Source: Rebecca billardiae RCC1528 (lineage: Eukaryota; Protista; Haptophyta). From it: 64,000 nt of DNA. Both the position numbers and the translations under genes were made by a program. Below the pieces are notes generated by a model. The model had not been told where the DNA came from, did not search any database, and saw nothing but the letters and a program-made list of their open reading frames with translations. The stretch is from contig OZ251225.1 of assembly GCA_965240325.2 (NCBI GenBank), positions 1,674,001-1,738,000 on the forward strand, written 5' to 3'. Positions 57,506-60,884 of the stretch are shown piece after piece (within the stretch, counting starts at the first letter, position 1; the number at the start of each line of letters is the position of its first letter).

Positions 57506-58252
57506 TCAGTCAGACTTGATGAAGCTCTTCACCAGCTCGGGGCGCACGTGCACGCGGTAGAAGTACACGCCGGCGGCAGCAGTCATGGCTGCGGTGCAGA
57601 GCGACCATGCGAGCGCCAGCGGCCACAGCCGCGTGGTGGTGCCACCGCCGTCCGCGCTGCTGTCGAGCGACGCAAACGCACCGTGCTTCATCCAGTGCAC
57701 CGCGCCATGCAGGTTGAGGATCGAGCCCTCGCGCAGGTACTGGAACTTGTCGCGCACGGGGTAGAGCGCGGCGGCAGATACGCGCCCGGCGTCACCGTGG
57801 AAGGCGGCGTTCATTCGGTTGGACACGTGCACGTGCTCCTTGTCGAGCACGCCCCAGAGCGTGAACGGTACGGGCAGGAATGCGCTCTGGCGTCCAGACG
57901 CAGACGACATGCCGACGCGGCACATCCAATGCGCCTCGAGCGCGACGAGCCGGCGGACAATCGCGTATAGCTGCGCGTCAACGAGCAGGCTGCAGCTGAA
58001 GAAGCCGTCCACGCCGTACACGAACGACAGAGGCGCGTCGCGCTCGACGCAGATGGGCGGCGGGCCCCACTCGCCCGAGGACACATTGCGACACTCGAAG
58101 GACAACTCGTCGCCAAAGGCGTACGGCGTGACCGAAGGGGCAGCTGGACGCTCCGTCGGCGCCGCGCCGCCGCCACACAGACACGCCGTCAACAGCCCGA
58201 CCAGAGCGAGGCCCCACCTTTGATTCCCACGTCGTCTTCGCGACGCAGCCAT
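57506..58252 (-). CDS. Uncharacterised type-I membrane protein with Cys-containing lumenal domain
   Basis: Signal peptide, Y.FGD....C...P.C.E...PL...YG pattern, C-terminal TM and KSFIKSD tail. Confidence 0.75.
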   Translation of the reverse strand: MAASRRRRGNQRWGLALVGLLTACLCGGGAAPTERPAAPSVTPYAFGDELSFECRNVSSGEWGPPPICVERDAPLSFVYGVDGFFSCSLLVDAQLYAIVRRLVALEAHWMCRVGMSSASGRQSAFLPVPFTLWGVLDKEHVHVSNRMNAAFHGDAGRVSAAALYPVRDKFQYLREGSILNLHGAVHWMKHGAFASLDSSADGGGTTTRLWPLALAWSLCTAAMTAAAGVYFYRVHVRPELVKSFIKSD

Positions 58253-58281
58253 CGCTCCGCGACGCTCGCCAGGAAGTCGTG

Positions 58282-60635
58282 GGCTTCATCCGGTTGCCAC
58301 ATTAAGCCTTGACCACCTGCCACATTAAGGGCCCCGCGACCGGCTGCCACATTAAGGCGACCGGCTGCCACATTAAGGATCCGCGCCAACGCTCGCACGG
58401 CCACCGACACGCCACGCGCGGAGCGATGCGCCGATGGTCTTCGGCTCGGTCGCAAACGTCCTGAACCGCGCTGGCCTGGTCAGTCGCCCTTTGCTCGACG
58501 CAGTCGTGCACTGGCCGGCGGAGGCAGTGGCGCCGGGCGTCGGGAAGCACTTCGAGTTCCTCGGTGAGGCTGGCGAGCCCGCGCCCGACAAGAAGCAGCG
58601 TGGCGGCGCGCGCGCGCCGTGCTCGCGGTGAAGTACGTGCTGCTCGCGAAGGGAAAGCAGTTCAAGCAGGGACACCTCGAGCACTCGGTAGATGATCTCG
58701 CCGTGCTCGCCGCTGACGGCCAGCGTGCGAAGCGCGCTGCTGGCATACACGGCGTTGAGCAGGTCACCGTGCGAGAGTGCTCCGTCAGACCCGTGGCCAA
58801 GGCCCTTGTCGATCAGCTGCGCTGAAGGGCGCGCGCAAGAGTGCGTGATGGAGGTCACTTCCAGGCAGGCTCCATGTTGGCTGCAGCGCTGCGTCTGCGC
58901 AGCATGCCCCCGCACGCGCGTCTGCGGGCGCACGCCTGCGCTCATCTGCAACCTGCGCTCGAGCTCAGCCTTGAGCGCGCTCAGCGTGCCCTTCAGCAGC
59001 TCGAGCTGTTCCTCCTTGCGCCGCGCGTCCGCGTGCGCCGCGAGTAGGTGCTTGTTCAGCGGCTGCACCTGCACCGCCGCGTGCTCGACGCTTGCCTCGA
59101 CCACCTCAACACGCACGCGCTCGCCGACGCGCTCCAGGGACTGCTGCGTCAGCTCATGCGCACAGTGGAGCGCCAGAGCGACACCTCCGCGCCGTCCACA
59201 GCGCTTATCGCCGGGCTGAGCGCTATGGAGAGCTACACGTGTGCCGAGGGCTCGAGCCCGACGACGCGAACGCAGTTCACCTCGCTGTACGACGAACGCC
59301 ACCTCGAGCGCACGAGCGCATGCGTCTACAGCGGGAGCACCGACGGCCGCTCCGGCAGGCTCGCCGCCGACTTCCCCAGTAGTAACTAGCATATCAAAGC
59401 CGTCTTCGGTAGCGCGCGAGGCTGGCTACAATACGGTGATGCTACACAACATGGGTTGCGTCACGCGCAGCACCACATGAGCGGCCGGCAGCGGCGTACC
59501 ATCGGCTGAGCTGTTCCTGAGTCACTGTTCCTCTGCAGAGGAACGTGCACGCGCGCGTCGACGAGCACTTACGCGCTCCGCAGCCTTCGGCACCTTGACA
59601 TCATTGCGCGTGCGCATGACAGGCGCGGATGGTTGCGCACTTGCGTGTCCGTTAGCGGCGCGCACGATCCGCGAGCACCGTCCGCCGGGGCCTTGCCATT
59701 GTCGACCTTGGACGGCGCACGGCGCACGGCGGCGCGCTCGCAGATTCGGTCGGGTAGCCCTCGCTGGACATGTGCTGGCCTCTGTTGCTCCGCTGCTCAT
59801 CGGACCGGGTGCCAATCAGTGGCCCACAATTGACGACCCGTTCGCCTGCCCCGCATGCTCGCACACGGGATGACTCAGCCTGGAGCCACCCCGGTCGAGA
59901 TTTCGGGATGTCAAAGCAGTGGCCGAGCATGCGCTCAAGCGCTCTCGTCCGCATGGAGCGTGACCTCTACCGTTCTACCGTCTGAGCGTCTGCCGTCACA
60001 TGAGTCGGACAAGTCCCCAAAGCTGGGTGCAACCAGTCCATCGGGAGTAGCCGCCAGGCCTCCCGCCACCACCGCAGCCGCGCCGCCCAGGGTTGTGAGT
60101 CCTGGGATTACCCGGGGTGGTCAGGCTGGCGCGCACGCTCGCGGACGCTTGGAACCCGCGCTCCCGCGCTGCGTCGCGTGTCACCCCTCGATCGTCGCCC
60201 CACCGCCACCTCTTCCATCCCATCACCACCCCTTCCTCGACATCCTCGGCCTTCGCCGCAGCACCGACGCCCCCGCGCGCGGCCGCTGTGGCAGCGGGCG
60301 ATCCGCGTGCGCTGCGCCGCCGCGCCGCCGCGCCGCCCAGAGTTGTGCAGCGCGGCCTGTGAGTCCTGCGAGCTGCCCTGTGTGGTCAGGCTGGTACGCA
60401 CGCTCGCGAACGCTTCGAACACTCGCTGCATAGCGTGTCGCCCCTCGATCGCCGCCCCACCGCCGCGTTTTCCTCCACGCACGGCGGCCGTCGCCGCCGC
60501 ACGAGCGCCCCGCTCGCGGGCCGCGCGCCTTAATGTGGTGGCGGGATCCTTAAATGTGGCAGTGGTCAACCGTCTGCCACATTAAGGCTTAATGTGGTGG
60601 CGGGATTCGGCTTAATGTGGTAACCGGCTGAAGTC
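58282..60635. mobile_element. Non-autonomous Mutator-like (Pack-MULE-type) DNA transposon
   Basis: 27-bp TIRs (58282-58308 and 60609-60635, 3 mismatches), 9-bp TSD GAAGTCGTG (58273-58281, 60636-60644), subterminal CCACATTAAG arrays, no transposase. Confidence 0.9.
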
Positions 60636-60884
60636 GAAGTCGTGGCCAACCGACAGTGGATGATCGTCCGACCATTGTTGATTGTACACATACATACTAC
60701 TGCTGTACAATTGTTACACAAGCGAAGCTCGGAGTCTGTCGAGTCTTTACCCCCAGCATACGACGTTTTGTGGACGACGGTGGGGCGAGGACGACGGGCG
60801 CTGGCGCGCCGCGAGGCGGCCGCAGCCCTCATCCAGGCCTCGCAGGCGGACGGCTGAACGAATTTTTCCGGCGGCGCTACCATC

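Follow-up and report, generated by a model that had tools for sequence, protein, structure and literature searches.

Pack-MULEs of plants are defined as Mutator-like elements (MULEs) that have no transposase and carry fragments of host genes (PMC6446971). Those of rice, maize and Arabidopsis (Jiang et al., 2004; cited in PMC6446971 and PMC5225508) are non-autonomous, lack a transposase and are flanked by target site duplications (TSDs) of 9 bp. The host fragment is present in them as non-functional genomic DNA with its intron, and insertion takes place beside the 5' ends of genes (Jiang et al., 2004). Gene pick-up of this kind also occurs in an animal. Of the non-autonomous derivatives that Muta1 has in the mosquito Aedes aegypti, about 20% contain pieces of host genes, "much like" Pack-MULEs (Liu and Wessler, 2017; PMC5225508). 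One such piece is a 276-bp kinase fragment. The TSDs are 8–9 bp long, and some derivatives are present in several near-identical copies; the autonomous partner is known, terminal inverted repeats (TIRs) are common to both, and transposition was shown (PMC5225508). The brown alga Ectocarpus has entirely non-autonomous families that carry genes, and, like other orphan MITE-like or non-autonomous families, these contain non-transposase sequence and are presumably moved in trans (PMC12477816). A literature search on haptophytes, transposable elements and Mutator turned up no report of a Pack-MULE-like element in a haptophyte; the paper on Tisochrysis deals with hAT and mariner families only.

The element described here was found in the genome of the haptophyte Rebecca billardiae, in a 64-kb stretch of DNA that was analysed whole and is called the window. 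It resembles the plant and mosquito elements in being non-autonomous, in its 9-bp TSD and in carrying a non-functional piece of a host gene, in this case of a myosin gene with its intron, and it is inserted beside the 5' end of a putative gene. Unlike plant Pack-MULEs, it belongs to a family for which the assembly holds no autonomous MULE with related TIRs, its TIR proper extends over only 27 nt and is followed by motif arrays, it has a single identifiable gene fragment, and its host is a GC-rich alga. The elements of plants number in the thousands and differ in their cargo, whereas here one capture appears to have given rise to about 19 copies. Muta1 has an autonomous partner, and no such partner of this element was found in the assembly. 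The Ectocarpus families are giant, belong to other superfamilies and carry whole transcribed genes, in contrast to the decayed gene fragment found here (PMC12477816).

Structure of the Element and Its Insertion Site

The element has a length of 2354 bp and a G+C content of 67.5%, against 66.5% for the window (Table 1). A preliminary description of the locus, made from the letters and open reading frames (ORFs), had reported TIRs and a 9-bp TSD over the range 58273–60644; this range takes in both copies of the TSD, and the 27-nt ends are inverted with three mismatches. Beyond 27 nt the pairing continues less closely, the 46-nt arms being 78% complementary, and the motif arrays extend about 100 nt into each end. 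TIRs of MULEs typically exceed 100 bp, against the 27 nt of this element.

The 10-nt motif CCACATTAAG occurs eight times exactly in the 64-kb window, compared with 0 in 100 shuffles, and all eight occurrences lie in the two ends of the element. Four are on the plus strand at the left end, and the right end has three on the minus strand and one on the plus strand. A ninth, imperfect copy has an extra A at 60548–60562, where the other four young copies of the element have the exact motif. The earlier count of four on the left and five on the right (one imperfect) was correct. The arrays are presumed to be transposase-binding sites. The 130-bp duplication noticed at 60080/60330 was also recovered, as two segments about 85% alike.

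A 248-codon ORF on the minus strand has its ATG 21 bp away from the insertion, which is upstream of it; this would place the element in a 5' or intergenic region, and the site looks like an intergenic region or a promoter. MULEs have a known preference for insertion at genic 5' ends. The position upstream of the ORF fits this preference; a single site proves nothing.

Table 1. Features of the element and its surroundings, in positions of the window.
Feature	Positions	Strand	Remarks
Neighbouring 248-aa ORF, signal-peptide-like start	57506–58252	-	No Pfam family; gene status judged from the ORF alone
Left TSD copy, GAAGTCGTG, 9 bp	58273–58281		Identical 9 bases at 60636–60644
Whole non-autonomous element	58282–60635	+	19 genome copies, 91–100% identity, colinear over entire length
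Left TIR, 27 nt	58282–58308	+	24/27 complementary to 60609–60635; 23-nt core confined to family copies
Left subterminal array, four CCACATTAAG (58297, 58320, 58347, 58368)	58297–58377	+	CCACATTAAG: eight in the window, none in shuffles; 116 in the genome, seven in the control
Interior without a parent in genome searches, with 65-aa ORF 58434–58631	58378–58637		Matches only family copies; no Pfam match
Captured myosin gene fragment	58638–59199	-	83% identity to contig 8, ~1224664–1225229
Myosin last-exon-like part	58638–58816	-	86% identical to parent
Myosin intron-like part, 129 bases	58817–58945	-	82% identical; donor ATGAGC vs GTGAGC
Myosin exon-like part (portion of coiled-coil exon)	58946–59199	-	88% identical to parent
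Interior without a gene parent in genome searches	59200–60072		Two ~100-bp stretches (59702–59797, 59864–59968) weakly like unrelated ORF-poor loci
Diverged internal duplication (60073–60216 and 60323–60473)	60073–60473	+	~85% alike; secondary matches in every family copy
Right subterminal array, CCACATTAAG on minus strand (60529, 60588, 60611) and plus strand (60577), extra-A copy 60548–60562	60529–60620	-	
Right TIR, 27 nt	60609–60635	-	24/27 complementary to left TIR, 3 mismatches
Right TSD copy, GAAGTCGTG, 9 bp	60636–60644		Directly outside right terminus

Copies in the Genome and Evidence of Mobility

Searches of the 72-Mb assembly of the same genome gave 19 copies of the family, 15 near full length and four truncated. 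Two further remnants were found, namely a 106-bp fragment of the right end and a 44-bp fusion of left and right termini on contig 26. The latter has the appearance of a copy that lost its interior by a deletion through the TTAA-containing motif. The locus C11:2280968 was considered as a different element with the same right end and was rejected, as it is the 106-bp truncated end.

When the ends of the element were projected onto each copy, perfect 9-bp direct repeats were found directly outside the termini in nine copies, and every one has a different sequence (GAAGTCGTG, GAAGTTGAG, CTGTCTGAG, GACAGCTGC, TCCGCCCAA, CGCCGCGGC, CTTTTTTTT, GGTCCCGGA, GAGGCGATG); the remaining copies have one end truncated or rearranged. 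The pairing of TIR and TSD thus recurs at other loci, a check that the preliminary description had proposed. Since nine copies are flanked by different perfect 9-bp repeats, it is settled that the target is cut with a stagger of 9 bases when the element inserts.

Alignment and a tree of the 19 copies resolved a youngest clade of five copies, about 100% alike and including the window copy, and older clades that are 94–98% alike (2–6% different). The near identity of the five copies indicates recent movement, and the family has been mobile in several waves, at least two, the latest very recent. The interior is of one kind in all 19 copies, and cargo that differs between elements, as in the Pack-MULE populations of plants, was not seen. 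One interior common to all copies points to a single capture before the family diversified, followed by amplification.

The Captured Myosin Fragment

The minus-strand piece at 58630–59060, in which an intron-like segment with the donor ATGAGC had been noticed, was traced to an exon–intron–exon segment of a myosin gene. The parent locus on contig 8 is a 1430-codon ORF with a complete Myosin_head domain (PF00063, E 2e-173), and the match is located at its 3' end. Pairwise alignment gave a homologous stretch of about 560 bp with 83% overall identity; a second match, at 86%, is to a tandem duplicate segment 930 bp upstream in the parent locus. The translation of the parent tail is colinear with the minus-strand translation of the element, and the last-exon part of the fragment ends about 30 bases short of the myosin stop codon, most of the last exon being covered.

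The intron of the parent starts with GTGAGC and ends with CAG, a canonical GT...AG intron that joins the exons in frame, as judged from the two reading frames and the splice signals. In the element the donor is mutated to ATGAGC, and an 8-base indel in an exon breaks the frame. The plus-strand piece 59070–59310 had been taken for a separate coding-like fragment; over its first 130 bases it is the myosin exon read in antisense, and the overlap runs to 59199. The parent segment lies within a larger tandem duplication of the tail, whose 5' limit is beyond that of the homology with the element; neither the ends of the element nor its other interior flank the segment in the parent gene.

The alignment identifies the cargo as host gene DNA of myosin origin, intron included, and retention of the intron indicates that genomic DNA was taken up and not mRNA. 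The 17% divergence from the parent may reflect either an old capture or a closer parent that was not sampled.

The Rest of the Interior

For about three quarters of the interior no parent was identified by DNA and protein searches of this genome, and the proposal that the cargo pieces would have parental genes was borne out for the myosin piece on contig 8 and for none of the others. A Pfam search with seven ORF translations gave nothing at E values up to 1 except a match to SlyX (E 0.19), which was set aside as due to chance. Six-frame protein searches of the genome with the 65-aa, 92-aa (59595–59873) and 192-aa (59855–60433) ORFs returned family copies only. At the DNA level, three interior stretches of about 80–110 bases are 76–80% identical to other loci, which are ORF-poor and unrelated to one another; a fourth weak match was rejected as a gene parent because it is a GC-rich simple repeat. 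An RNA gene was also rejected, the only Rfam match being a sub-threshold chance one.

Two further pieces had been described as coding-like, and neither held up. The plus-strand piece at 58434–58620 corresponds to the 65-aa ORF, which is interrupted by TAG in older copies. The broken C2H2-like piece with the FACPAC..H motif is the end of the 92-aa ORF. Both are without a Pfam match and match only family copies. In each candidate frame, the sites at which the 19 copies differ show no preference for any of the three codon positions, with for instance 15, 20 and 23 sites in the 192-aa ORF and 51, 43 and 54 in the long minus-strand ORF. This even spread indicates that there is no coding constraint anywhere in the interior. 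The 192-aa ORF stays open in 14 copies; at 67% G+C, chance is expected to give long ORFs.

No transposase is encoded in the copies of the element, in agreement with the preliminary description, and the interior has no similarity to the two MULEs with transposases found in this genome. A decayed transposase in the interior was ruled out by the absence of Pfam matches and of tblastn and blastn similarity to these local MULEs.

Search for a Transposase and Assignment to a Superfamily

An autonomous partner, which the preliminary description expected to be found by its shared TIR, was not detected in the assembly. Searches with the left 128-bp end, the right 136-bp end and the whole element gave family copies only, and to these copies were also confined the 23-nt terminus (two mismatches allowed) and the 12-nt terminus as inverted pairs. 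CCACATTAAG occurs 116 times in the genome, against seven in the control, nearly always inside family copies; arrays of this 10-nt motif, and of its 8-nt core (74 against 0 in the control), were found in family copies only. The terminus had no match in metagenome contigs. The motif-pair pattern occurred there in at least 120 stretches, and none of the 80 that were inspected as loci was like the element.

Two MULEs were found in the assembly. One, on contig 23 (326265–330030, 3.77 kb), encodes the PF10551 MULE domain in an ORF of 966 aa (open frame 1051 aa); it has 124-bp TIRs that are 99% alike and are built of a repeated short motif, and the 9-bp TSD CCGCAGGCA. The other, on contig 10, is about 8.4 kb long and has TIRs of about 350 bp composed of CCCGGG-centred palindromes. 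MULEs with 9-bp duplications are present, young and recently active in this genome. The contig 23 MULE resembles the element in its 9-bp TSD, in ends made of a repeated short motif and in recent activity, and differs from it in having its own transposase, in ends that begin CCCCTTACG and in lacking any similarity to the family. Neither the ends nor the interiors of the two MULEs are related to those of the element family.

A TSD of 9 bp is typical of Mutator and is also reported for Merlin (8–9 bp), and that of hAT is 8 bp. hAT was excluded, since all nine intact TSDs of the family are 9 bp long. Searches of the genome for PF12762 (IS1595/Merlin-type transposase) gave no match and no candidate, and PF00872 (bacterial-type Mutator transposase) was likewise without a match. 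A 9-bp TSD with G...C ends had been read as the Mutator signature. The TSD keeps its value as an indication; the G...C ends do not, as the bona fide local MULE starts with CCCC. The length of the duplication and the presence of active MULEs favour a Mutator-type enzyme as the one that moves the family, with a likelihood of about two in three.

The element has no transposase, a TSD within the 9–11 bp used to recognise Pack-MULEs, and a host gene fragment, although one only. A Pack-MULE family is normally defined by having its TIRs in common with an autonomous MULE; such a MULE was searched for and not found in the assembly. The most fitting label is that of an orphan, non-autonomous family of Pack-MULE-like type that carries a single captured piece of a myosin gene. 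The designation as a Pack-MULE-like transposon with scrambled host fragments therefore stands for a real non-autonomous element with one such fragment, and not for several, as only the myosin piece has a parent.

Origin and Movement of the Family

The observations are combined most readily, with a probability of about 0.68, in a non-autonomous cut-and-paste transposon of about 19 copies that is moved in trans by a MULE-type enzyme, and that acquired a piece of a myosin gene before it was amplified. The transposase, supplied in trans, would bind the element at its 27-nt inverted termini and presumably also at the subterminal CCACATTAAG repeats, of which each end has four or five. Excision would be followed by reinsertion with a 9-base stagger, giving the 9-bp duplications. 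Such a stagger is a hallmark of Mutator-type (MULE) transposases. Before the family diversified, its ancestor would have acquired, as genomic DNA, a stretch of about 560 bp at the 3' end of the myosin gene, in which the intron lies between part of the coiled-coil exon and the greater part of the last exon. Template switching while an excision gap was being repaired, the mechanism proposed for Pack-MULEs, is the probable route. The composite would then have multiplied in two or more waves, and the five near-identical copies to which the window copy belongs would come from the most recent one. The cargo would be decaying neutrally, with no product encoded.

The most serious competitor leaves the element and its myosin fragment as they are and attributes the movement to another superfamily, Merlin/IS1016-like (with a TSD of 8–9 bp) or an undescribed family of transposases, which would make the element Pack-type and not a MULE. 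Its ends are common to no MULE in the assembly, its TIR proper is short and accompanied by subterminal repeats, and the length of a duplication is by itself a weak ground for assignment to a superfamily. The genome, however, yielded no IS1595/Merlin-type transposase domain, it contains young MULEs with 9-bp TSDs, and nine of nine intact TSDs are exactly 9 bp, so that another superfamily is considered unlikely. Less probable still, with only a small chance, is the preliminary description taken in full, in which pieces of several host genes, some on one strand and some on the other, make up the interior of a chimeric Pack-MULE. It would account for the ORF-like stretches on both strands, for the two stretches of about 100 bp with weak matches elsewhere (76–80%) and for the 192-aa ORF that is open in 14 copies. 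Against it stand the absence of Pfam matches and of codon-position bias, protein-level searches of the genome that returned family copies only, weakly matching loci that are ORF-poor and mutually unrelated, and a fourth match that is simple GC-rich repeat. The long ORFs are also accounted for by chance at this G+C content, and the plus-strand piece 59070–59198 by the antisense of the myosin exon.

Similarity in itself has no direction, and the myosin tail is unusual in being internally duplicated; the 3' end of the myosin gene could then have been built from a transposon fragment by exonisation, and the element would contain no host DNA. Such a reverse transfer is very improbable. In the gene, the segment runs without a break into a longer duplicated coiled-coil unit, which goes on past the common part, it has intact splice signals and an in-frame junction, and it carries none of the flanking interior or ends of the element, which argues for transfer from the gene to the element. 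The copy in the element, by contrast, has a defective donor and an interrupted frame. The capture reading is accordingly retained, and with it a wider version that is tentative and rather doubtful: the family may be moved by the transposase of an element with wholly different ends, recognition depending on the CCACATTAAG repeats and not on common TIRs, which would constitute cross-mobilisation, and Pack-MULE-type capture and amplification of host gene DNA would be operating in an algal lineage remote from that of land plants.

Significance

The family is a new example and not a new mechanism, gene pick-up being already known from plants and a mosquito; the preliminary description had regarded Pack-MULEs as known chiefly from flowering plants, and the mosquito derivatives show that they are not confined to plants (PMC5225508). 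The practical value is modest: the one fragment in the element has decayed and gives no sign of a function, and comparable elements have already been described in plants and a mosquito. It documents that host gene DNA, intron included, is picked up and copied around the genome by DNA transposons in a GC-rich, marine-type alga. For plant Pack-MULEs, such capture has been described as the route to exon shuffling and to regulation of the antisense or siRNA type. Because the family is young, with five copies about 100% alike, it could mark ongoing transposition and serve as bait for the active transposase.

Mutator-Like Elements and the Parental Myosin Gene

Two elements carrying a match to the MULE transposase domain were found elsewhere in the genome. 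The element on contig 23 is a compact Mutator-like element of 3.77 kb, which contains an ORF of 966 aa (open frame 1051 aa) with a PF10551 domain, and is flanked by the 9-bp duplication CCGCAGGCA. Its 124-bp TIRs are 99% alike and consist of short repeats of the CAGAGAACATCTCTG type. It was single-copy in a protein search, and is surrounded by a large array of diverged repeats of about 30 kb. The element on contig 10 spans ~8.4 kb; its TIRs of roughly 350 bp, 86% alike, are composed of TAAATCAGCCCGGGCTGATTTA palindromes, and its MULE-domain match is weaker (E 6e-9).

The coiled-coil tail of the parental myosin gene contains a tandem duplication of ~930 bp, and its two units are nearly identical at the protein level.

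Remnant and Rearranged Copies of the Family

A 44-bp remnant on contig 26 joins 24 bases from the left terminus of the family to 24 from the right terminus, the two stretches sharing the TTAA, with no target-site duplication visible around it; it is probably an internal-deletion derivative. One copy on contig 1 (locus L031) is preceded by an additional left-end fragment of 48 bases in tandem and has no duplication in its flanks; this copy is a rearranged or self-nested insertion.

Insertions and Extra Bases at the Motif TTAA

Three family copies contain inserts of ~1.5 kb, each located exactly at the TTAA within a CCACATTAAG motif (Table). The inserts start with GGTGGCAC, finish with GTGCCACC and are accompanied by duplication of TTAA. 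Two of the three match each other over their full length in both orientations, and are therefore foldback-like. In two nearly identical host copies, the same TTAA is occupied by different insert subfamilies. Across the genome, 37 insert ends were detected vs. 0 in the control, with ~17 insertions, ten others of which sit at ordinary AT-rich TTAA sites. The family holds roughly 0.3% of the genome TTAA sites, as estimated from base composition, and 3 of ~17 insertions within it represent a strong excess.

A different 1.5-kb insertion, with the CACTA-like termini CACTGGG...CCCAGTG, adjoins a right-end motif of another family copy (locus L023).

Several family copies have 1–4 additional bases exactly at the motif TTAA, for example TTAATTAA, TTAATTTAA, TTAAAA, TTATTAA, and TTATAA. 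These could be plain indels, but they resemble footprints left by excision of the TTAA-inserting elements.

Table. Positions of the features in genome loci (L numbers) and on contigs.
Feature	Locus	Contig	Contig position
TTAA insert, ~1.5 kb	L028 1089-2590	8	2729488-2730989
TTAA insert, ~1.5 kb	L029 1121-2639	1	143820-145338
TTAA insert, ~1.5 kb	L033 3291-4792	16	1657490-1658991
Extra bases ("imperfect" motif, one additional A)	window 60548-60562		
Extra bases		3	2280347
Extra bases		11	2538095
Extra bases		11	1893940
Extra bases		11	1891706
Extra bases		1	147574
Extra bases		8	2733225
Insertion with CACTA-like termini	L023 3271-4760	1	931970-933459
Family remnant, 44 bp	L046 1027-1070	26	539626-539669
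Left-end fragment	L031 1016-1064	1	1795816-1795863
Myosin tail duplication	L020 4400-6260	8	about 1223400-1225260
Mutator-like element	L040, L047, L050	23	326265-330030
Element with MULE-domain match	L048, L053	10	1914372-1922781
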